Positions 26,810 through 46,812 of a DNA stretch of 64,000 nt are shown here, piece after piece. Made by a program: the position numbers and the translations under genes. Source of the DNA: Podarcis pityusensis (taxonomy: Eukaryota); assembly GCA_964106645.2 (NCBI GenBank), contig OZ067044.1; one strand, written 5' to 3'. The notes under the pieces are model-generated. The model made no database searches. It saw nothing but the letters and a program-made list of their open reading frames with translations, and was not told the DNA's origin. Within the stretch, counting starts at the first letter, position 1. The number at the start of each line of letters is the position of its first letter.

Positions 26810-27031
26810 TATTTCACAGTGTCTACACAAGGAGGTAATCAGCTCAACTTTTTTTTAATATAGATTATTTTGTTTTGCATTATCTGGTCTGGGGGCAGTT
26901 TCTCATGCACCTTGGGAATTTTAATACACTACTGTTGGCGAAAGAAAGAGAAATTTTAAGGCATTATTGAAGCATATATATATATATATAACCATAACCA
27001 TTAGGGTAAACTGATCCAAGTATTAACCTAC

Positions 27032-27469
27032 CTAGTTGGCTTGGGTCTGTAGTTATACTCCTTTGATTTGACATACGTTGGCGGATGTCTGGATGCTGAT
27101 CAAGCAGAAGCACTGTAGCTTGCTGCCATGCACAAGGCCACTGCAACCGGTCATCATTTGCACCAGAGATCAAGTGCAAATGTATGTGTAAATTAAATGA
27201 ACTGGTGGGGAGCAAACCAATCTGAAATGCATACCCTTTGGGAGAGTAAAAGGGTGGACTATATTGTATTGTAGCGCTTGAAACCAGCTGAGTGAAATTT
27301 CTTATATGCCAAACATGGTGAGGGCACTGAGTTTCTGACAGGTTGATATCATCAATGGAAAGGCCTCCATTAGATGCATCGGATCCTTTTATGCCTTCAA
27401 ATATTACTCGGAATTTACTTGCAACATTTAAAGACACATGGTGTAACTCCCAGTAGCCTGCAGGTGAAC
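27032..27469 (-). CDS. MEP1B: MEP1B exon 11 (end of MAM, MATH/TRAF domain)
   Basis: (G)SPAGYWELHHVSL...GGLSIDDINLSETQCPHHVWHIRNF...LQWPCAWQQAT...RSITTDPSQL, 438 nt, donor G|gtaggt. Confidence 0.95.
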
Positions 27470-28285
27470 CTGGAAAAGAATAATGAGGTGCATTATATTG
27501 ACAACATATTTCAATGTTACACAAACAGATTTTCACATTCCCCATGAAATTTAAAAGGGGTTAAATGTTGAACAGTTCATTTAGTCATTCATATTTGTGT
27601 ACTTGAGTTTTATGCAGGACTTATCCTTAAAGACTTTTCAGTGCTTCCCCTGACGCAGATTACAGTAGCCTGCCTCCTGACTGTGGTGGATCACAGGAAA
27701 CATTACTTCACAGATCTCAATCTACTGGTTTTTAAATGTAATATATTTAACAGTTTAGGCTCAAAATACAATTTAAAAGTCCATCACTACAGTGTCCCAT
27801 AATAATTTCAGATCAAGACTTCCATGGATCAATACGGGCCTCCTTTTTGTGGGGTTGGGGCAAGAGAAATCCATTAAAAACACTATGGAGAACCCAGACC
27901 AAAGAATAAAATACTTGTGGTCTCAGAACTTTTCTTGTCAAATGTGAAATGTTAAACTCTAGCCTAGTCCTCACCAGCATAGTAAACTGGTGTCTGAACT
28001 ATACAGCTTCAAACTCTACATTTTTTAATTGATCTCCATTTTTTTAAAAAAAACACACCTCCACATCAAAAACTTGATGTTATGGGGTGAGGAATGTGGC
28101 TTAATCTTCTCTCTGACACGCTAGCATTCTATACAGAGGAACGTTTTGTTATTTTTAAACAGAGGAGCATGCAATAATTTGAGCCCCCACCTGCAGTCTA
28201 AAGTGATACAGAGTAGGCACAGATTTACTACCCCAGTGTTAACTAGAACAAGAGCGTATACATATTAAAAATAATGCTTTCATAC

Positions 28286-28501
28286 CTTGTATCGTTTTTA
28301 CAAGCCTTTGGGTACCATTGGGGCTTGCATCAGTGTATTCCTTGACTAAAACATTCAGCTGATCACTTTCACTTCCGCTGTTGTAATAATAGAATTGTAG
28401 GCACTGGAAACCTCTCTTGGGATATAGAAATCGGCTCTCTAAAACCGCTCGTTCTGACACACTTCCAGCACTGGTATTAAAATGCATAAAGTAGCCAGTC
28501 T
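28286..28501 (-). CDS. MEP1B: MEP1B exon 10 (MAM domain)
   Basis: (E)TGYFMHFNTSAG...LESRFLYPKRGFQCLQFYYYNSGSESDQLN...KTIQ, 216 nt. Confidence 0.95.
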
Positions 28502-30028
28502 CTGTCAAGGAGAAAGAGAGAGAGGAGGGAAACTTTTAGAACTTCTTCACCCTCCAGACACTGGCATGGAACCCCCTGGAACTGTTGGTGCTTAATGTTC
28601 CTCAGTCAAAGCAACATTTTACCATCTAGTGATTGCCTACAGTGAACCCTAAAATTTTGAGTGCGCTTTAGAGAAAGCATGGGTGCACATCACCCCAATC
28701 TCTGAGCAGTGTGAGATTCCAGGGTTCCTGGCGCTTACTCAGGGTTTGTGTTTCCTTCAGAATGTGGCACAATGGAGACTCTGGTGTCTTTATGATATAT
28801 GGCTTGTTTACACCTATATGCAACCTGAGCCTACAATGGAGGGGTTCACAGGATTAATACCACAAGAGGACCTTGCTTCCCCCATAGCTGCAACCTTGGA
28901 TTCAAACAGGAATCAAACATTGATGTCTCTCTCTGTCTTCTCAGCTTGCTGGTTTGCTTCTAGCTCACATCACTCTACTCTCAACTCTGGTTTTGTCTTT
29001 CTAACCAGCTGTGATTTGGGGGATAGGCCCCACCCATTTGCCATCTCGCACAGATCCACTTCCTTTGTTACCTTAGGAACCCAGAACTTAGTGAGTCTCC
29101 TGAGCCCTGTACAGGTGTGTCTGTTTTGCTGGCAGACAAACTGGCTAAGTTTCAGAGTTTCTACTTGGGTGTCTGTTCTTGCACCTTTGAACTGTAGCTG
29201 ATTCTTGTGTGGTAAGTGCAGAAGCACAAATTCCTGCTTTGTGTGCTCTTTTTCTAGACTCCCAGTTCCATCAGACTCTGCCTAGCAAAGCCTTGCTGGA
29301 AAGAGGCAAGTCTTTTTCAGTCTTCTTTGGGGATTTATGCTAAGCATTCCCCACTTCTCCTTCCTGCAGTTAGGACAGGAAGGAAAGGAATAACCCCTTC
29401 TTCACCTTGCTGCCTTCTTCTTATCAATTTTCCAACTTCTACTTTTCCAACTTCTACTTCTACTATTCTCCTCCCATGCAAAATGAAACATCACTGTGCA
29501 GCTTCCTTGGCCTGCCATAGTTTCACACACACCTCTCCTCCAGAACAACTTTCAGAATTAAATTACCATTTTCAAATATTTTTAAAAATAAATCCCCAAT
29601 TCTTGAAAAACTCTAGTCTTGCCTCTGTTGCTCCCCTGTGTATCTTATGAGGGCACTTCACTATCCAGGCTCCAACCCACATTTATGCATGTTGTTCTCC
29701 AGCGTATTTTGGTAAACATTCTAGTTTATGGAGCAGCTCTACGGAAGGGGCAACATCCTGTCTTCCCACAAGAACCAAGGTCACAGTGGGAAATGGCTCC
29801 CCCAGCCATTCAAGTTCTGAAAACAGCTTAATTCCCTTAACATGGAAAAGTAGGTTGCAGACATGTATAGAGATATGACTTGAAATAATACGGTAAACAT
29901 TCTAATTATCTAACAGGCATGGTTAACAACGCAATAGCAATTTATCAGCAAGTTAGTGAGGTTATGAAGATCAGATACATCCACAGAAAATACTTATCTA
30001 AGAGATAATAATAATTGCTGTACATTAC

Positions 30029-30181
30029 CTTGGCAGATTCCAACATAGGTGTGATCCGTTTGTGGTCCACTAGGAACCTGGGTTATGCGCTGCCAGTCAG
30101 CATTATCTTCTGTACTTTGAATCATGCCACACACGTTTTCAAATTCAAAACTGCACGTCTCCATAAAGCTTAAAGACGAAG
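30029..30181 (-). CDS. MEP1B: MEP1B exon 9 (MAM domain, includes dimerisation Cys in GICQ)
   Basis: (T)SSLSFMETCSFEFENVCGMIQSTEDNADWQR...DHTYVGICQ, 153 nt. Confidence 0.95.
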
Positions 30182-31223
30182 CTACCAGCATTAAAAAAAA
30201 CAGAGCAGATACAGTGTTTGTTTACTTTAGTGGGACTATTCAGTCAACTGCATCAGGAAATAGTTTGGACCCAACTAGATATGCCATCAGGAGATCTGTG
30301 ACTCATTTGTACTTCTAAAATACAAAAGCTGCTGTAAACAGTGGAGAAGTAAACAGAGTCAAGGAGCCTGCAGGTGAGATGGCTAAACCCTTTTCCATCT
30401 CACTTTTTCCCTAATCTATATCCCCACCAGCTGCCAGCTGCCTTGTGGGAGGAAACCTGTCTGTCTGGTATTGTTTTACCTCTAGTAGACAAAACAGTTT
30501 TGGCATGAATGGCATGAGAGAAAGGTTAATCTCCCCTAGGACCATTGTTCCATATAATTCTCAACCTTCACCCGGCAACTGCTGTTAAACTTTTTTTTTT
30601 AAAATGGGAAATCCAATTACAGATCTTCTCATATCTCAATTAGTTAGAAAAACCACAATGTCAAAAGAACCAAACTCTGTTCTAACGCAAGGTGGGTTCA
30701 CATCACAGAGAAGTTTCTGTTTTTTTGTGCATTTTAGTGCCCCCCCCCCAGCTGTTCACAACAGCATGGCTTCTTTAGTATCGGATTCACACAGGCAGGG
30801 ATGTCTTTATAGTATGCAAAGGTTTTCACACCTTGGCTAGAGATAAATTAGGAATGGCCTGAGGACTCTGATTGCTGGTTTGGGAAATAACGCATCAAAC
30901 AGTAGTATTTTATAACAAAGAACAGGATATATATGCATTTTGCATGTTGCATGTTGTCATGTGAACATGGATTTAAAACCCAGTACTACACATGCAATGA
31001 ATGCATGGTAACTGAAAGTGTGAACACAGCCTCAATCACTCTATGATCAATCAGTGCTATTAGCTGAATCCATAAACCACTTCAAGTAGAAGTAAATGAG
31101 TTTCATTTTAGAAGAAAATAAATAAGTTGGCTTGTTTTATAGAATGAGCAGTATCCTTCATTCACTGCTAGGAAAATCAAAAGGACCTTTAAAGGGAAGA
31201 TTTTGCACGCTCAGCAATTTAGT

Positions 31224-31236
31224 GTGGGTGTGTGTA

Positions 31237-31291
<55 letters not shown>
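31224..31291. repeat. Compound (TG)n(TA)n microsatellite
   Basis: Direct reading. Confidence 0.9.
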
Positions 31292-31296
<5 letters not shown>

Positions 31297-32593
31297 GGTA
31301 TATGAAAGAGTTGGGTGGCACCTTAAAGACTTACACCTGTATTATGGCATTATGGCATGTGTTTTAGTGGACCACATTCCTAACTGAATTGGATGTAAGT
31401 AAAATCAACTGACCGTATAATGACCACCAGGCCACTTATACTGCTTTTCAGCCTTAATTTTTTCTTCTTCCTTTGTTTAGCATCCTACCTGAGGAAGCAG
31501 CTGCTTCATTCAGAATCAGACCATTGGTCCATCTGGGTCAGGTGTAGTCAGTGCAGCACCTTTCAGTTATTGTTGCACTAGAATTCCTATCAGCTACGGT
31601 TGCCATATTTCAAACAGTGAAAAGTTGTTGAACTTTTTTTTTTTAGTTTTGCCCAAAGTTGTTGAGGTTTTTTGGGCAAAATCACTTTAATAAATGCAAA
31701 AAATGGCACTGCCAACATGAGCACCACCCGGACACTGCTGCTGACAGTGTCCAGGGAAATCCAGAAGCATGAGAACATTATATCAGCCTCAGTCACATCA
31801 GGCAATCCCAAACAATCCTGTGATCCTTTGCAGCGCTGGTTTCAGTTCAAACCACCAAAGCACAGGGAAACTTATGCTTACAGCACATCCCACTCTGGGG
31901 TCTGCTGTAAGTGCAGATCCCAGCCAGCTTGCTGTAAGCACCAATCAGCCGAGTGGCATATACAGGCAGTCTGCTAGGGGTAGGCATTGCTTGCGCTAGA
32001 GAGTTCCTGACTAAGAGTACAGTCAATCCCAGCCACCTTGCCATAACCGCCAATCTACAGCCCTTACAGGAAGCCAGCTGGAATCAGTTTGTGCTCCTGA
32101 GCTGGTAAGTGCTAACAGGAAGTTAACTAAGGCACCCATTTGTTTTTTGGCAGCTAATTCTCCACCTCCTCAAACCTGACATCACAAATTATGTCAGGTA
32201 TGGGACAGGTGGGTGTGCTTTGGGGAGAAATGGCACTGGAAACCCAATGGGGACATGTGCTGGGCCTAATTGGGTCCTTGGGCTGGATGTTCCTCACCCC
32301 TGTCTCAGATGCTAGTGGGGAATTTATTTGCAACTATAAAGCTACTGTATTCCCAGGCAAAAGACCAGATTTAACTAACAGGCACTGCTAGTGGAAGCCT
32401 GTGCAAGCACTTCTGCTAGCACCAGAGGACTCTTCCCCTCTCCTCCCCTTGTGTGCCCCCAAAATTGGCTCAGGGGGAGGGTTGGGAGGAGAGGAGAGAT
32501 TGCTCCACCAGCGCAAGCATCTCTGGCTGCCAGATGGAACAATCAGAAGAGGGCAACACTGAATTCGTCCCAAAGTAAAGTTCAGCAAACAAA

Positions 32594-32690
32594 TCATAGA
32601 ATTGTAGAGTTGGAAGGTACCCTGAGGGTCATCTAGTCCAACCCGCTGCAATGCAGGAATCTCAGCTAAAGCATCCATGACAGATGACCA
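32594..32690 (-). mobile_element. CR1 3' terminus
   Basis: CATAGAATTGTAGAGTTGGAAGGTACCCTGAGGGTCATCTAGTCCAACCC, the reverse complement of an ATTCTATG-type CR1 end. Lies 40 nt from the exon 8 donor. Confidence 0.7.
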
Positions 32691-32730
32691 AAGGAGGCTG
32701 AAAAGATATGATGGGGTTTCAAACACTTAC

Positions 32731-32949
32731 TGCAGTTGTAGAGTCGACTCAGCTTCCGGATATCATATTCACTGAAATCCATGCGCTGTCCAATCACATC
32801 AATGAAGGCTGGTATATTTGTTACTATTGTTGGTTCTGTTCCATTCCTGAAGGCATTTTTACTGTAGTGCATTACAGAGTTATAGTCATATGGGACATTA
32901 AGGAAGTCAGATCTTTTATCATCATATTTGTTGAAGTTTCCTTCCTTAC
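32731..32949 (-). CDS. MEP1B: MEP1B exon 8 (Met-turn SVMHY)
   Basis: (G)KEGNFNKYDDKRSDFLNVPYDYNSVMHYSKNAF...GQRMDFSEYDIRKLSRLYNC, 219 nt. Confidence 0.96.
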
Positions 32950-33625
32950 CTGAAAGAAGCAGAAGAACTTACCACGGTGACTTATACAGATCACAATCCA
33001 GCCAAAGCTAAGCCCTTTTCAGTCCCACTGGTTTAGGTTACAGATAAGCACACTCTTTAATATCTCTTCCATTGCAATATTACAAATTTATAATTTATGT
33101 CCTTAGCCTGCTGTCCCATCGCTTCTTCTTTGAATTCCAAGTATATCATACAGAACCACAGAGTATTTATTTATTATAGTAGTTCCCAATTTACAATGCT
33201 TTGCAAGCAGAAAGAAATGAGAGAGACTCGATGCAGCAGGCATATACAGAATTCCAGATAAGTCAAGCTTCTTGGTAAAAGGAGAGGGGTCAGATGTAAG
33301 GTACATGTACAAAGAAACAGAAGTTTCCTGTTTTAAAGAGAAAGGGGAGTTTCTAGCTGGAGCCTAGAAGTAGATCAAGATGCAATTGGGGGGACATCAC
33401 TGTAGAAGAGCCCCGTTTACCTTCACTCATGCTCTGCTCACATATTGAGAGGTAAAGCAAATATTCTAAAGGTGCCGCAAGTGTGTGTGCCATCACCCAG
33501 AGGGAAACCTAAACCTGGCAGCACTGCCCCTTGAACTTTTCCCTGCTTGGAAGAGCAGGGAGTATATAACAATGCATCACATTTTGGACATTGCCATCCA
33601 AGTCAGAAAGCTTTAATGAGATTCA

Positions 33626-33931
<306 letters not shown>

Positions 33932-35144
33932 CTAATTATCCATCAAAGGGTTCACTCAGAGGAAACCCTTTTCACTTGCTCAAACTAATTCTGCAAGGCA
34001 GAACTTGCAGAGACATTGCTTCTGCCCAGATTCCCATGCTGGATTGGGTACTGTGCATACAAACCAAATGAGATGCACACCTGTACTTAGAGAGTTTAGA
34101 GAGAGATCTGAAACACCTTCCATTTGCTCTACAAGGCGTGAATGGTGATGGCATAAATTCCCATCTGCATTGTAAGGCCTTAAGCTGTGTACATGTCTTT
34201 GTTTATGACTATGTATCTAGTAAAGCTTTGGTGTGAAAAGCCTCTTACGAATTTTATATGGTTATAGAATTGGGGGTTTGGTCTAGATGTCATATTTAGG
34301 ACCCCTCAAGGCCTGTGGTTTTACATCTGTAAGATGTGATTCTATAGCAGAAGGACTGACTGAAATGGTCAAACCAGTTCCTTTATTAAGTGAATGGGGC
34401 TAGCCAAGTCTGTCAAGTTAACTCTTAGCACAACTAAAGAGTTGGTCAAGTATAAGTGTCTTGCTGTAGAAATGACTGGCTAGTGATGTTCCTAGAGGGG
34501 AACAGCCCCCCACCCCCAATGCCTGGAGATGCAGTGATGATTGCACTATGGTGTCTCATAGTGAGGTAGACTTGGGAAGAGGCTTGACTTGCTCTCTGTG
34601 CTGAAAGCATCTAGAAACGGATGCAAAAGCAAAATATGCTGAGGTGCTAATGTTGTGAGCCCTTTCATTTTATGCTTAGCTAGTGTATGTGTGTGAATAA
34701 CACCACCACAAAGATATTCCAGTGACCTTCATTCAAAGGAAACCAAACCTGAAGTGTGTGCTGGCACCCCTTACATCTTTCATAACTTGGAAATTGGAGT
34801 GTGTTTAACAATATTGTATGCCTTGAAACTTTATTCATTCAGTGATTTGCCAGCTCCAGGTTTTGGGAAGGCCTTAAACAAGACGTCTTCAGTGCCTCCT
34901 CCTGAAACGAGCCCTTCTCTCTTTGCCACAGTCACTGCTGCCCATTCACTTTCCTTCTTCCTCTGGGCTTAATCTGCATGGCCATCTCTAGAGGGAGAAG
35001 GCAAAGTGGGGTCCTCTTGCTCCTATCTCTGGGCAGAAGAACAGGCCATGGCAGTTACAGATAGGTAGCCGTGTTGGTCTGCCATAGTCAAAATAAAAAA
35101 AATCCTTCCAGTAGCACCTTTAAGACCAACTAAGTTAGTTCTTG

Positions 35145-35182
35145 GTATGAGCTTTCGTGTGCAAGCACACTTCTTCAGATAC
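35145..35182 (-). ncRNA. Second, identical minimal hammerhead motif (sense in MEP1B pre-mRNA)
   Basis: Exact reverse complement of 35230-35267. Confidence 0.7.
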
Positions 35183-35229
35183 ACTGAAACAGAAGTTGCC
35201 AGACAACTTCTGGCAACTTCTGTTTCAGT

Positions 35230-35267
35230 GTATCTGAAGAAGTGTGCTTGCACACGAAAGCTCATAC
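35230..35267 (+). ncRNA. Minimal type I hammerhead ribozyme motif (Penelope-type)
   Basis: GTAT-CTGAAGA-A-GTGTGC-TT-GCACAC-GAAA-GC-TC-ATAC: helix I GTAT/ATAC, CUGANGA core, 6-bp helix II, GAAA, palindromic AGCT in place of helix III, UC cleavage site. Confidence 0.7.
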
Positions 35268-37708
35268 CAAGAACTAACTTAGTTGGTCTTAAAGGTGCTA
35301 CTGGAAGGATTTTTTTTATTTAGGCCATGGCAGCAAAGAGAAGCAGACTTCAGGAGTTGAGAGTGGTGAAGCAACTAAAGATATGGCCCAAGCAGGTACC
35401 AGGGAATACTGACTTCTGACATATAAGCCAGATTCACTGGGTTGTGCCCAACCCATTAATTTCAGTGGGTCTAGTCTGCATAAGAGTAGCATTAAAATCA
35501 ACTCAGCATCTGCAGAATGCCTACAATACAGCCAGAATGCCCTTTGAATTATGTGCAGAAAGGCTCTGGGATGGAACAGGATGTTGAAAGTAAACACATG
35601 GTCACTTTTAGGAGTGTTCCATATGACCAAGCAGTCATACAGTAAGCACACATGGCAACCAACTATGCATGTCTGCTGTACAGCATCTTCAGTTTTACTA
35701 TGCAATTCAGAAATGTGAGTGGATCCAAAACCCAGAATACACACAAATGAATTGCCATGAGGATCAACCACCATATAGATCAGTGAGCAAATAGGAATGC
35801 TGTTCTCCAGCCTTTGTTTCTCTCACAGAGAGCCAAGGCAGATGGTTTAAATAGATCAGTATGGATCCAGCAATGTTCTCCAGCAAAAACCATGGTTTTT
35901 AGAGACACAGGGAGCATTACTCAATCCACCAGGCAAGCTGCTTCTCATAACTTGCTGGCTGTGTGGGCCATCCATTGTAGGAGGAATTTTAAGTAGCCTC
36001 CACCCAGCCACTAATTCTGTTTAGCCCTGACTATGCAAAACAACGCAGACATGGATGAAAGGAGAACAGTGACAGCCTTTTGGGGTTAAGGGACTGAATA
36101 CACCTATTGACATTCTCTCAGCGACTTACAAATTTTAAAATAGAAAAATACAATTAAAATAACAAAACAATAGAAACAAAAAAGATATTCGAAGTATTCA
36201 TCCACCACTGATATAAACAAGGAAAACTTACCCACCCACCCCCACATATAAATCCTTCCTCACTCAACTAAAAGATGAACACTGAGATGAGCTAAACGTC
36301 ACATCACATCAATTAATATTAACTCCTTGCTTATGAATTTTGTAAAATTAGCTCCTGACTTTATTTGAACTTCAAAACAATAGCCAAAAGACCAGCCTCC
36401 ATATCCTGCAATAACCTTTCAGAAAAACTTACAGGAAGTTCGTGATCTTTTATCTCAGCTGATTCAGTTCTCAGAATCTGACAAACTCTGTTCTTTGAAC
36501 TCAAGGCCCAAACTGAAATACATGTTTTATTGCTTTTCACAGTTGAAAAAAAGAATAATGTTTGAAGTTCAGCCAAATCTTAAGCAGTTTATCACCTTTG
36601 ATTGGTCAAACAGTCCTTTAACAAATGAGCATTGAAAACTGTGATTTTGCAAGGCAATGAGAGTAGAATCGGGGGTTTTTAAAAAAGTATTTCATGCAGC
36701 CATTCCTGCAGACTATAAATTCATATTGGTTGGGTAAATAACTTTTATCACCAGTTTATCACTGTTGCTAACAAGCCACCATAAAAAGCAAGAACATACA
36801 GCACTTCGTAGAAAACAGAATTCTGGATAAATGTTATTTATAAATCTATAAACAGTCTACTCTTGTTCAGTATTCTGAGCAATGACAAGGAACTTTTGGT
36901 TGAAAGGAAGACAAATTCCAAGAGCAGACAAGATGAATAAGCAGCCTCTCAAATGTTAAAGTAAGTATGATCCCAGCAGAAGAAAGAAACATACTGAGAC
37001 TTAAGAGCTGCCTTGACTCAACACAGATTTCTTCATTGGTTCCCTACTTTTATCCTTTAATGTAATCCAAGCCTAAGGTTTGCAGTATAAATCACAGACG
37101 ACTCCAGGTGACCTGTTTATTGAGCATTCAACCTAATTTGCTTGCTTACGCAGAGGTTACACTGTGACTGTCCTTAACTGGGTATTCCTTCTGCTTTGCT
37201 TGCAGGGAGGTTATACAACAATGAGCATCGAAGCTGATTTGCTGTGCACTGCTTATACATCTTCCAGTTATTCATTTGTTCATCTCACTTTTCAGTGCAT
37301 TTTCCCATCACACAAACTAACTGTTGTTTTTTCTAACTAGGCTTGCTGCATAAATCCCCTTTAACTGAGCAAACCTAAATTTCCATTATGCACTTGAATC
37401 CCTACCACAAAATATTGACAGTCTGGAGGCAACCATATAACTACTTTGAATAGGATGTACAAAATACTCTTATCAGCACAATGCCACAAAGAATGAATGT
37501 TGCACCAACGTTCAGGCTCATAAACCCAGAGTTGTGACTCAACCTGACAAACATCTCTACAGATAAGCAAAGTTTTAAAAACTTGGAGATTGGAGTTGGT
37601 GGGGCAGTGCCCCATTTGCCCTAATGAGCCAGCCTCCACTCGTATGTGAGACTGTACAGAGACTATGAAAAAGAAAGATACATTACTTAAAAGGATGATT
37701 TCTCTTAC

Positions 37709-37826
37709 CCACTCCCTTTGAAGACAGATATGTAATTTGCTTCGCCTTCCCAGGGTTTGAAATCAATACAGGATTTTAGGCGATACTGTTCAAATGCATT
37801 GAGGATCAGCCCCTTTGCATTCATAT
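37709..37826 (-). CDS. MEP1B: MEP1B exon 6 (astacin domain)
   Basis: ccag|AT...GG|gtaaga, (D)[39 protein letters not shown], 118 nt. Confidence 0.95.
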
Positions 37827-38712
37827 CTGGAAGAAAAAACAACGAATTGGTTATCGCTCACCTAAAGGAATGCCCTTTCAGCTAACCCTCCACATAGCAA
37901 CTGGAAACTCTGCTATTAGTACTAATGAGTATAAATTTGGTAGACTAATATAATTTAAATTGTTGGGAGAATTATTAAAGCCTTTTCAAATATGCCTTTA
38001 GCATAGGAAAGTGGACTGTAAATACCTTTTAGAAGTAACCCAATTTGCTCTACAAAGCTCTCTTTTGCTTCCTTGGACTGTTGATTTGCTACAAGCCTTC
38101 AAGCTAAGCAACTAGTTCTATTTTCCAAGCCATTATACTCTGATATGTACTGGGATCCAGTAGAGCTGTTTTAACACTGAGTTTCTGTCCTTCCAGTAAC
38201 TGGCTCTGGTCACCAATCTGGCTGCAGCATCTTATAAAGTGATAAGCAACCAGATCTTCACTGTTAATCCCAAATTGGCACTTTTGAGTTTGAGAGAAGG
38301 TGCAAGATAATGACATAATTACTTTATTACTACAAGCAGCATACGGTAAGTGGAGTTTGTTGTAAATTTGGAAGTTGGGCAATCTTTTGCCTCTATTTCT
38401 TTGCATTGCTATTCTCACCCCAAATCTCTGAGCAGCTAAGACACGGCAACTTTCATCAAGGCTTGGTTTCTTTTAGAAGGAGGTCACTAGAAGCTTACTG
38501 GTGAGTCATAATATTGGAGTGTAATATTTATACCCCTGTTTGTATACAGGCTGAGCTTAATGAGGCATAGCTTAAACATTCAAGCAGTCAACCCAAACCC
38601 ACGGCTTGCACATCAGACCTTCTAGGGTCCTGGCCAGAACTCCAAGATGTTTACAGACCCCAATTTCAACTCTTTGTGTTTCTATGCCTTTGCAAGTCTC
38701 TGTTTCAAAGTA

Positions 38713-38937
38713 CAGTGGTACCTTGGGTTAAGAACTTAATTTGTTCTGGAGGTCCGTTCTGAAACTGTTCTTAACCTGAAGTACCACTTTAGCTAATGGG
38801 GCCTCCAGCTGCCGCCACATGATTTCTGTTCTCATCCTGAATCAAAGTTCTTAACCTGAGATAATATTTCTGGGTTAGTGGAGTCTGTAACCTGAAGCAT
38901 CTGTAACCTGAAGCGTATGTAACCCGAGGTACCACTG
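38713..38937 (-). mobile_element. Same MITE family, copy 3
   Basis: TA|CAGTGGTACCTTGGGTTAAG...GAGGTACCACTG|TA. Confidence 0.87.
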
Positions 38938-39086
38938 TATGTATTGTCCTGTTGTTCATGGTCCTCCTCCAGGCTATAAGAAAAGAGAATCTGGAGGAGT
39001 CATCTCTTCTGACAGCCCATAAAAATCTGATAGAAAACTCATAACTGCTTTGCTGACTCATGGCACATTGCTTATAATGAAAGATA

Positions 39087-39298
39087 CAGTGGTACCTCGG
39101 GTTACAAACACTTCAGGTTACAGCTAACCTGTAAGCAGTACCTCAGGTTAAGAACTTTACCTCAAGATGAAAACAGAAATTGTGCAGCGGCGGCAGTGGG
39201 AGGCCCCATTAGCTACAGTGGTACCTCAGGTTAAGAACAGTTTCAGGTTAAGAACGGACCTCCGGAACGAATTAAGTTCATAACCAGAGGTACCACTG
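39087..39298 (+). mobile_element. Same MITE family, copy 4 (variant internal sequence)
   Basis: TA|CAGTGGTACCTCGGGTTACA...GAGGTACCACTG|TA, with an extra internal TIR-like TACAGTGGTACCTCAGG. Confidence 0.85.
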
Positions 39299-39675
39299 TA
39301 TATCATATCTGTCCAAGGTTTGACTAAACCAGATGTATCCTTTATAACTTTTTGGAATTCCTGGATAGCGCTGTTACCTTCCACATGCAGGCCTAGCTGG
39401 TTTTATTTACAAGTTGAGCTTGCATTTTTATCAAATGCTGAAGTTTCTTTTTCTCCATATTACTGTATTGAAAGGTGGGTTTTGTAATATACTTTTTAAA
39501 ATTGTTGGTAAAAATCAAAGTTTAAGAAATTATATCCCATTTGTTCTTATGAAGTAAGCCTTTTACCCCAAATCTTGGCAAATATACCACCAAAATTAAT
39601 ACTGAAGAAAAGAACAAATGTTCATACTGAAGGTTGCTTCTGCAACAAGTGATCTTAAGAAATTAACTGCCGTAC

Positions 39676-39754
39676 CTAGGCTGTCCTCAAGGACATATGG
39701 AATGGTGTGAGGCCATCGATATTCGTTGCCAATAATGGAGTTACGTTCTAGTCT
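39676..39754 (-). CDS. MEP1B: MEP1B exon 5 (activation site R/NSIIG, start of astacin domain)
   Basis: ttcag|AGA...CTAG|gtacgg, RLERNSIIGNEYRWPHTIPYVLEDSL, 79 nt. Confidence 0.95.
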
Positions 39755-41115
39755 CTGAAAAGGAAGGCAAATCCAAGAAATTCAGAGAAAGAAAGCACAA
39801 GAGTTGGCACTGTGACTCCTCTGAGTTCAGACTTTTGCTCTTTAGGCACCTGCAGTGTGGTGCATCCAGTTCCTCATTGTTCTTGCACACTGGGATTGGA
39901 TAATTGGGGCTGGTCTGTTGGAAGTGCCTCAGTGTCGCAGAGTTGCAGCTATATGCAAGACTGAATATTCTGTGCACCCCTGGGATTTATTTACAAATGT
40001 AGACTCAAGCACTGGATGCAACATTTCAGAAAGTTGTGCACTCAAGTGAAAACACACACACTACCTTCATGTTCCTTATAGCTATTACGAAAAGGTATTC
40101 AAATGTGTGCCTTCCGCATGGTGCAATTTCTGTTGCAGTAAAAAACACCTGATCTTACTCAAGTAGTCAAGGGCAAAGCTCACATGGTTTCCCACTGGCA
40201 ATCCTTGAAATAGTGTATTAGTCATAGGCATGAAATCAGTTTCTTTAGATGCTTGATTGTGACATCCCAGAGGTCTTTTGGAAGGCCCTTAACCTCACAT
40301 CCCACATGTCATCGCTTGATATGCCAAATTAAATGGGGGTTTCATTGCTCCAGTTTTTCTCTGGGACTAGATTCACCCTACAAAGAGTCAACAGCTGCTG
40401 CCACATGCTAAGTTGTCAGAGCAGTAGGGCTATTAAGTATTACAAGGTGTAAGATTTAACTGGGGCACCAAGTCACTGCCATCTTCTAGTATCCCTGCAT
40501 CAAATTCCCCTGGAGGGTCGTCAGTACTTGCTGTTAACTTGGAAGAGTACCAAAGTAATCACAAGGAGTAAGAAACATTCTAAATTCTCTTGGACCGGAT
40601 CATACCAGTTAGCTAATAAAAAACTTAGATTTATTAACACAAAGAACACAGAATTCCAAACAATGAAAGAAAAAGATAGTATGTTTAAATCATTGCTCTT
40701 GCCCAAGTTGGTGGAATAGGCAGGCAGGTCTTATCTCACATGCTGCACAGGATTCATTTTTAGAAGTAATAGTTGGAATGGGGGCGGGGGGGGGGACTGT
40801 ATCCACTTGTAGTTGCAACATAGACTCCAGGGAGCATTGCTAACTAACTCCAGCCAGACATTAAGAAACGGCATGGGTGTTTGTTTATACGGCCTTCCCT
40901 GAAACACTGAGGCAGTGGTATGTCTGCCTGGGCAAAAATCAACAATGGAACCACAATTTAATCTGCTGCATCCCAACTTTGCATGACACTTAAGTACAGG
41001 GGTATAACTTTCTTTGGAATCTTCTGACCATACAAGCCTGTTAAATACAGTGGTCTAATCATTGAACGGAATTGAACTATCAGCATAAGATTGGATGAGA
41101 TGTACAGGCTGTAAA

Positions 41116-41116
<1 letters not shown>

Positions 41117-41171
<55 letters not shown>
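41117..41171. repeat. Compound (TC)n(AC)n microsatellite
   Basis: Direct reading. Confidence 0.92.
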
Positions 41172-44862: not shown

Positions 44863-46812
44863 TATTGCAGGTGTTTGATATATACCTTTTGACAGAATGA
44901 AGCAAGAGGGCATTTCAACTTTTTCATCGAACATCAGTGCCAGAATAAAACGATTGTTGATTGGTCTTCGTCTACCTTTATATACTTCTCGTTGGATAAA
45001 GATGGTGGAAGTAACCAAATGCGATGCCTCAAACGAGGTGTCTTCATGATGAACCTAGACAAAGACTCAGTTATTTGAACAGCCACATTCAGCTTACGTT
45101 TGGGGGGAAACCCAGAACATTTAAGAGAAGGAAAGCAGGGATCATTCCATTTGGGCAGCTAAATTGCTTATGCTGACAGAATTTTGGACACAGTACATTT
45201 AATTCCTCCCCTCCTCAAAATCTCTTTGGTTACCTTGATCAGCCTAGTTCTAGGATCCTATATATCAGATCCATGACCTCCATAGGTCCAAACCAGTGGC
45301 ATTGATCTGTACTGCTGATCTTTGTAGAAGTGAAGATCTTTATTTAGAAGCCAATCTTAAAATTCTTCATCAGATTTTGTTTGTGTTGCCTACATTTCCC
45401 TTCAATTACTGTTATGGGAACGCCTTGGTCAGGATCGCACTGCAATCGACTCCACCCCTATCAGTACTATTACGTGATGGCTTATCCAGATAGAGTTATG
45501 GGGTATTCATCAACCTTGAAGATTTTTCAGTGGTGACCCTCTTTTTCATTAACTCCACTGAAATAAATCTGTTTCCTGCCGATGACTAGAAGAGGAGCTC
45601 ACCTTGGCCCTAGCCTGGAACATCTCCCAGGAAGGGAAGAGAACCCTTGCAGTTATGGCTATCTGACACTTGCAAAATGGAAACTGCCAATCCTACCTTG
45701 TCTCTTAAGTAAACAAAGTGGGCACAGCATCCAAAGTATGAGAAATACAGATTATGTCTAGCATAAGAGGATCCATCTCATTACAAAGGCGTACATCTTC
45801 AATGCCAGCCTTTGGACCTTTCGAAGTGTGACTTTCAAAGGATGTTTGTGTTTCGGTTGTCATATTGTTTCAGAAAGCATGAATTAGGGTAGGTTGGCTT
45901 TGAAATGGAAACTGAATGAAATTACTCCCCCATCCCTACTCTCAGGTAAGTGTATATATAGGATTGCAACCTTAATGAAGTAGAAGGCTGCTATGTTAGA
46001 GAGAAAAGTAAATGCTAAAAAATAGATATCCATAGATCAAAGAGCCCACAAAGAACAGAATAAATTCCAGTTGCCAAGCAGATAACATGAATGAAATTAT
46101 TGCTTATACTGTAATAATTTACTACCTACGGTATGTTGTACTTCTCCCTTACTCAAAAGCCAATTGTTCATTCTTTACTTCTCTCTCCCAGCAGTTATGA
46201 AGTGAGTTCAGCATGGTTATTTTGAAAGAAAAACACTCAGCTCTCAACTTGTACTTTTCCCGTATTGTTTTTTTAAACAGTAGAAGCCACATAATTCGGT
46301 AGAAAAACTTACAAGGGCAATCAATAACCTTCTCCAATCAACTTCTCCTACATTAACAAGAGAAAGCCACCAGATTGAGAGAACTAGTAAATGGGATCAT
46401 AAAACTGAAAATGGAATTATAGGCACATGTAATCCATGCAATCAGTCTAATGCACATAGCTAGACTTCTGCTCATAAAACCAGTCGAATGAAATGGAATT
46501 AAATACAAAAACTGCAAACTGCATCAGTGCATTTTTTTTATATTAGTCATTGCCATATACTGCAGATTGCCTGCTTTCTTGGATATAAGCTGCTTTGTAG
46601 TATGCACAAAAGGTTAAAGTGAAGTTTTAGCATTACTTTCTTTTCCCGCAGGCAATTTTGCACTGCTCCTTGGAACGTGGGGGGGGGGGGGTCTGGACTC
46701 AATGAAGCACACCTTCCCAACCCTTCACAAAGCTGTGCTGTGGCAGAGCTATCAGGGGCAGACTTTGGTCTTTCACATTTCAGCAATGCCGTGCGAGGAC
46801 AAAATTCAGCCC

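Follow-up and report, generated by a model that had tools for sequence, protein, structure and literature searches.

The MEP1B gene in a 64,000-nucleotide (nt) stretch of DNA from Podarcis pityusensis (contig OZ067044.1; hereafter the window, which is free of any N) harbors a 267-base pair (bp) insert at 35055-35321 that carries an exact palindrome. We regard this insert as very probably the product of a single integration of the Penelope-like element (PLE) type, in which two 5'-truncated copies of the element's 3' end were placed head to head within a 12-bp target duplication. Judging from the exon matches, which lie on the minus strand at both sides and agree with the placement within MEP1B proposed in an earlier note on this sequence, the insert occupies an intron of about 3.9 kb, inside the protease-domain part of a gene that runs on the minus strand. 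Public runs of four organisms (A, B, C and D), all stored as assembled contigs, were compared with the window. From left to right, the locus comprises the following features.

33623-33919, minus strand: MEP1B exon with the astacin zinc site, just downstream of the insert-bearing intron (the limits are those of the open reading frame, not splice sites).
35043-35054, no strand: left copy of the target-site duplication, AGGCCATGGCAG, a direct repeat that is present as a single copy at the empty sites of B, C and D.
35055-35090, minus strand: 36-nt extension of the left arm only, whose sense strand begins TGACTATGGCAG, read as a PLE "tail" from the asymmetry of the arms and from published descriptions (PMC8557442, PMC11167929).
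35091-35203, minus strand: left arm, a 5'-truncated element copy and the exact reverse complement of the right arm, matched by thousands of contigs.
35145-35182, minus strand: minimal type I hammerhead motif, mirror copy (descriptor match), with a predicted cut after the C at 35149.
35204-35208, no strand: spacer CAACT, read directly from the sequence.
35209-35321, plus strand: right arm, a 5'-truncated element copy that ends without a tail; in run X1, record 8 links 35296-35321 with the right flank.
35230-35267, plus strand: minimal type I hammerhead motif (descriptor match), with a predicted cut after 35263.
35322-35333, no strand: right copy of the target-site duplication (direct repeat), which aligns to the start of the element tail at 9/12 positions.
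37720-37830 (approximate), minus strand: MEP1B exon upstream of the intron (MNAKG...CIDFKPW...YISVFKGSG), located by motif search in the minus-strand translation.

The coordinates given in the earlier note for the exact 113-bp palindrome, its CAACT loop, the 267-bp insert and the 12-bp duplication were reproduced. The two 113-nt arms are asymmetric at their outer ends, where the left arm runs 36 nt further and the right arm lacks these nucleotides. Beyond the right arm, the inverted repeat carries on, with mismatches, into the right copy of the 12-mer: the next 12 nt of the element's sense strand read TGACTATGGCAG against the target AGGCCATGGCAG, with seven identical positions in a row, a resemblance with a chance probability of P ~4e-4. 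The left junction is ambiguous by 2-3 nt, given that the last 2-3 bases of the left duplication (CAG) also match other family copies, and the loose ends of other copies begin at 35052/35053. At the center, the CAACT spacer together with the next four bases repeats the 9-mer CAACTTCTG located 10 nt further on. A BLAST search of the element against the 64-kb window found no second copy elsewhere in it.

In the four organisms, the arms belong to an abundant family. Between 1,905 and 15,841 contigs per run fall on the arms, 1,684 of the arm-matching contigs in X1 (a run of organism A) are at least 99% alike, and the summed word depth on the arms exceeds that on the flanks by 4-5 orders of magnitude, a figure that is not a copy number. 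Other copies do not stop at the inner ends 35203/35209 but continue into a common TATA-like sequence (agreement of the loose ends 0.64-0.9), and the present copy is therefore 5'-truncated and lacks the TATA-like region. Moreover, about 350 of the joints listed link left-arm to right-arm positions on one strand, with 0-6 letters of filler and varied breakpoints; these are head-to-head junctions of other family copies. Many of the breakpoints cluster at 35182-35184 and 35228-35230, approximately 30 nt after the TATA-like motif, and this cluster probably marks the 5' end of the family's usual transcript. The two arms of the present insert agree at all five family-polymorphic sites (35094, 35102, 35137, 35141 and 35164), which, as a pattern of sequence, fits one source for both arms. 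As a separate observation, the share of depth with this copy's letter at 35137 is about 58% in A, 64% in D and 7-10% in B and C; family-variant shares that differ by organism would point to lineage-specific subfamily bursts, though these are a hint only, as depth sums are unreliable.

Whether the insert is old or new at this locus can be read from the flanks. In organism A, record 1 of run X1 covers the left flank and ends at 35079, and record 8 begins at 35296 and continues into the right flank; neither differs from the window, and in these contigs each flank is joined to the element's 3' end, in opposite orientations. The other three organisms carry the empty site:

Organism B: record 16 of run X4 passes from 35042 directly to 35322, with 3/1222 flank differences.
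Organism C: record 23 of run X8 passes from 35042 directly to 35322, with 6/1218 flank differences.
Organism D: record 12 of run X10 passes from 35042 directly to 35322, with 10/818 flank differences.

In each of these contigs, a single copy of the 12-mer and adjacent record coordinates define an exact empty site, and the empty allele with a single AGGCCATGGCAG, which the earlier note had suggested looking for in other species, is found in all three. The single copy of the 12-mer at the empty sites identifies the 12-bp repeat as a true target-site duplication. The flanks of B, C and D diverge from the window by 0.25-1.2%, and the empty sites imply that the insertion is younger than the split of A and B (0.25% divergence), or else is still unsorted between A and B. 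The insertion is young and lineage-specific, and a single integration by an active family produced it. The lack of mismatches between the arms, from which the earlier note had argued for a very recent event, carries little weight in this respect: only about 0.3 differences over 113 nt are expected at the age of the A/B split, and identity consequently says little about age by itself.

The hammerhead motifs were examined with a descriptor script for minimal hammerheads, based on the account given by Cervera and de la Pena 2014 (PMC4209133). It matched the 64-kb window at only two places, 35230-35267 on the plus strand and 35145-35182 on the minus strand, and gave 0 matches when both strands of 200 random first-order Markov windows were searched. 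The earlier note had described a motif on each strand with cuts at 35263 (+) and 35149 (-); both motifs are recovered, and the cut sites follow from them as predictions. In order, the motif consists of helix I (GUAU/AUAC), CUGAAGA, an unpaired A, helix II (GUGUGC/GCACAC), GAA, AGCU and C17, and it thereby has the core boxes CUGANGA and GAA, the A15.1/U16.1 pair, a residue other than G at position 17, and helices I and II. Four features have been reported to emerge in the minimal hammerheads of PLEs (PMC4209133): one unpaired base separates position 9 from position 10.1, G10.1 pairs with C11.1, helix II is long and helix I short, and the core of helix III is a palindrome. All four are present, with the unpaired A at 35241, the G10.1-C11.1 pair at G35242-C35255 and the palindrome AGCU at 35259-35262. 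As far as sequence can tell, the minimal type I hammerhead motif in each arm lacks none of the features known from PLEs, and cleavage is predicted. In its minimum-energy fold, a 46-nt monomer piece forms helix I and helix II on its own (-7.8 kcal/mol), and a helix III formed in trans, by four pairs between two copies, adds about -3.9 kcal/mol. Published PLE minimal motifs show no detectable cleavage as monomers and cleave weakly as dimers (PMC4209133), and the motif of an anole PLE cleaved only when the PLE protein was present (PMC11167929).

The assignment to PLEs draws on published hallmarks: copies are frequently truncated at the 5' end, a second 5'-truncated copy lies inverted beside the first, a tail of 30-40 bp is often one-ended, and the pseudo-long terminal repeat (pseudo-LTR) contains a hammerhead (PMC8557442). 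In an anole PLE, two neighboring reverse-transcription start sites bracket the tail (PMC11167929). The insert displays 5' truncation, an adjacent inverted and likewise 5'-truncated copy, a target-site duplication with its empty site, and a one-ended tail whose 36 nt, at the left end only, fall within the expected range. These hallmarks, together with the empty site in B, C and D, bear out the description of the insert in the earlier note as a young Penelope-type insertion. Canonical endonuclease-bearing PLEs (Penelope/Poseidon and Neptune; PMC8557442, PMC11167929) share the truncation, the inverted copy, the one-ended tail and the duplication, and their hammerhead motif likewise lies about 60-95 nt upstream of the element 3' ends; here, the predicted cut site is 58 and 94 nt from the two outer ends. 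In the Poseidon_Ac (PAc) family of Anolis, the cut at +26 and the reverse-transcription start at +111-118 are about 85-92 nt apart, which is close to the 94 nt seen here. In contrast to canonical PLEs, the insert comprises only two short 3' fragments with no coding partner seen. The target here is GC-rich and has the 9/12 match to the element, while in PAc reverse transcription begins at AT-rich sites in the absence of homology. PAc itself was tried as the source family and ruled out, as both the hammerhead and the downstream sequence, compared by eye, differ from its consensus.

The motif can be compared in the same manner with the minimal hammerheads of metazoan PLEs (PMC4209133). These have the same core boxes, unpaired base, G10.1-C11.1 pair, 6-bp helix II and 4-bp helix I, their helix III is likewise reduced to a palindrome (AGCU here) that can pair only between two copies, and closely spaced motif pairs on opposite strands are reported among them. 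The present motif differs from those published in its A at position 7 and its two-base helix II loop, and is known here from sequence alone; most family copies carry another base in the helix II loop (35164). Animal non-LTR retrozymes (PMC7229834; Li et al. 2026 preprint) are also short and non-coding, with a type I hammerhead and kinship to PLE pseudo-LTRs, but they are direct tandem repeats able to release circular RNA, whereas the units here are inverted. A non-LTR retrozyme was accordingly rejected as a description of the insert, the motifs being on opposite strands with no unit between two same-strand cut sites. Also discarded were metagenome matches to the pattern of the element's 3' module (L001 637-699 and L002 10242-10304), which are chance hits in GC-rich bacterial coding sequence common to both contigs.

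Several points weigh against reading the insert as a single PLE-type integration. The class has been assigned from structural hallmarks and not from an autonomous copy that combines reverse transcriptase (RT) and GIY-YIG with the same 3' module, and the element shows no resemblance to the Poseidon_Ac consensus (PMC11167929 File S1, compared by eye). The target 12-mer is GC-rich, while the anole PLE favors AT-rich sites, and the 36-nt asymmetry could be a product of microhomology joining instead of a second start site. The X1 contigs listed stop 25-26 nt inside each end, so that the center of the palindrome is backed by the assembly alone, and X1 possibly comes from the same individual as the assembly and is not certainly independent of it. 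Finally, the Rfam hammerhead models returned no match, either in the window at gathering scores or in the region and a 71-nt arm piece at E <=10; the motif thus falls outside the curated Rfam hammerhead families, whose models have a helix III in cis. This miss is expected, because helix III cannot form in cis within one copy.

Of the alternatives, the one that fares best, though we consider it unlikely, is a non-autonomous hammerhead element, retrozyme-like or similar to short interspersed elements, that is moved by machinery other than that of PLEs, for instance the reverse transcriptase of long interspersed elements. No protein-coding partner was found, a protein search with the 49-amino acid open sense frame of the element gave no candidates, and the apparent start of many copies near 35228-35230, about 30 nt past the TATA-like motif, suggests a transcription unit of about 130 nt. 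The ends of the element, however, lack a poly(A) or microsatellite tail, and ends at internal positions, an optional 36-nt extension and common inverted head-to-head copies are PLE signatures (PMC8557442). Animal retrozymes have, moreover, themselves been argued to be derivatives of PLEs (10.64898/2026.07.22.740005).

That the palindrome is a fold-back artefact of assembly, with its second arm absent from the animal, is very improbable. Palindromes are prone to assembly errors and no contig among those listed bridges the center at 35204-35208, but the joints in X1, of the left flank to the antisense tail and of the right flank to the end of the sense arm, require two opposed copies. The exact 12-bp duplication agrees with the single copy at the empty sites, and the many other head-to-head junctions of the family in four organisms likewise speak against an artefact.

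The surrounding gene bears on a further possibility, that of a function. Among solved structures, a minus-strand open reading frame at 26964-27545 hits meprin beta at E = 2e-66 and meprin alpha at 9e-32, and a further upstream MEP1B exon lies near 39.7 kb on the minus strand. Recognizable MEP1B exons span 26964-39720 on this strand, with the MAM/TRAF part at 26964-27545, MAM pieces near 28.2-28.5 kb and 30.0-30.2 kb, and the C-terminal part of the astacin domain at 32.67-32.87 kb. Dinucleotide microsatellites occur at 31250-31300, 41080-41140 and 46600-46800 (CV/YI/HT runs in the translated reading frames). Adjoining the insert, contig word depth at 34705-34755 and 35419-35520 is 20 to 75 times that of the unique flanks in all four runs, and these segments are other interspersed repeats of moderate copy number. 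Given the minus-strand orientation of MEP1B, the motif at 35145-35182 is the only one to enter its precursor messenger RNA (pre-mRNA), in which the order is antisense arm, spacer, and sense arm with tail. The insert lacks the family's upstream TATA-like region and would be transcribed only within the MEP1B pre-mRNA, where it would form a perfect 113-bp hairpin. Computed RNA folds give -234 kcal/mol (z = -33.6) for the plus strand of the palindromic segment and -239 kcal/mol (z = -28) in the sense of the MEP1B pre-mRNA.

The extreme stability of this hairpin and its position inside a transcribed intron could be taken for a selected regulatory structure, or a self-masking ribozyme switch acting on MEP1B RNA, and inverted Penelope copies do produce small interfering RNAs in transformed flies (PMC3681739). 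We nevertheless hold such a device to be highly unlikely. The insert is missing from three close relatives with nothing conserved, and without it in the sister taxa no conserved function is possible; its structure is generic for the family; and the pre-mRNA would contain one monomeric minimal motif, of a kind without detectable cleavage (PMC4209133). The single motif would need a second copy in trans for its helix III, and it would be locked in the 113-bp duplex. The sequestration of the ribozyme in the MEP1B pre-mRNA, as envisaged in the earlier note, therefore stands in so far as the one motif at 35145-35182 lies inside the duplex, but its reading as a device does not, as this type of motif is reported to need a partner copy (PMC4209133). 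The same holds for the "self-masking ribozyme cassette" proposed there: the hairpin is generic for the family, and the same genomes contain hundreds of further junctions of this kind. The palindrome is a normal footprint of the PLE class, not a regulatory device, and the "self-masking ribozyme" is a by-product. Most likely, the insert does nothing to MEP1B. As a side effect, the hairpin may be edited as RNA or enter small-RNA pathways; the targeting by ADAR or Dicer and the DNA cruciform suggested in the earlier note are plausible, as is instability of the DNA palindrome. Rfam microRNA models match the palindrome at 35124-35288 (plant MIR1222, 68.7 bits; mir-85, 49 bits), both below their gathering scores, and such sub-threshold microRNA and small-RNA matches reflect only the long hairpin.

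The least credible alternative is a palindromic DNA transposon (a miniature inverted-repeat transposable element), whose terminal inverted repeats would be flanked by the 12-bp duplication. Nearly the whole insert is one inverted repeat within a duplication, but it has 36 extra nt at one end, and other family copies occur as single arms with variable 5' ends and with variable head-to-head breakpoints, which fits truncation of complementary DNA (cDNA) and not cut-and-paste movement.

Returning to a single PLE-type integration as the preferred reading, one event of an abundant, currently active, hammerhead-bearing retroelement would have placed both copies. Both outer ends would then be element 3' ends, in other words starts of reverse transcription, with the 36-nt tail on only one of them. 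Twin priming in L1 offers a parallel, in that both target strands prime cDNA and leave a partly inverted insertion with a normal target duplication; the inverted part of such an L1 insertion is, however, present only once, in contrast to the same 113 nt in both orientations here. Two routes to the present structure can be envisaged. In the first, nicks staggered by 12 bp would leave two 3' overhangs, both of which would prime cDNA, in keeping with the anole PLE protein, which nicks and extends both target strands in vitro (PMC11167929). The top-strand overhang would prime at the distal site through a 2-3 nt match (CAG), the bottom-strand overhang would prime 36 nt further in, where it can pair with the RNA at 10/12 positions counting one G-U, and the two cDNAs would be joined at their 3' ends. 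In the second, the top strand alone would prime; the cDNA would stop 20 nt upstream of the usual transcript start, fold back and copy itself, and the 9/12 match would then serve to link the new strand with the opposite end of the target. The second route would account for both arms ending at the same base, and the first for both outer ends resembling start sites, while the breakpoints of other copies, with symmetric and asymmetric junctions, fit both. At the turn, the repeated 9-mer CAACTTCTG suggests a slipped template switch, by which the spacer may have been templated. We tentatively raise the possibility, itself rather less likely than otherwise, that the locus records an in vivo PLE integration primed on both nicked strands, with a distal start that produced the 36-nt tail and a proximal start aided by pairing at 9-10 of 12 positions.

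As a single locus, the insert is of little importance, since it adds a further copy to an abundant transposon family and shows no hint of a function. The kind of element is already known, and what is new lies at the locus itself: the empty sites in three relatives, the one-ended tail and the 9/12 match to the target. For annotators, transposon palindromes of this type call for caution, as they mimic microRNA precursors, and for the study of these organisms, the insertion is a useful marker that separates A from its closest relatives. The mechanism of complex inverted PLE insertions is still unsettled, and in this regard a clean and dated example with exact arms, an empty site, a one-ended tail and microhomology at the other end has modest value. 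If priming on both nicked strands proves true, however, the hundreds of equally young palindromes and the empty sites of sister taxa in this lizard group could reveal the second half of the PLE transposition cycle, and the same lizards could show whether PLEs choose targets that resemble their own tail junction.

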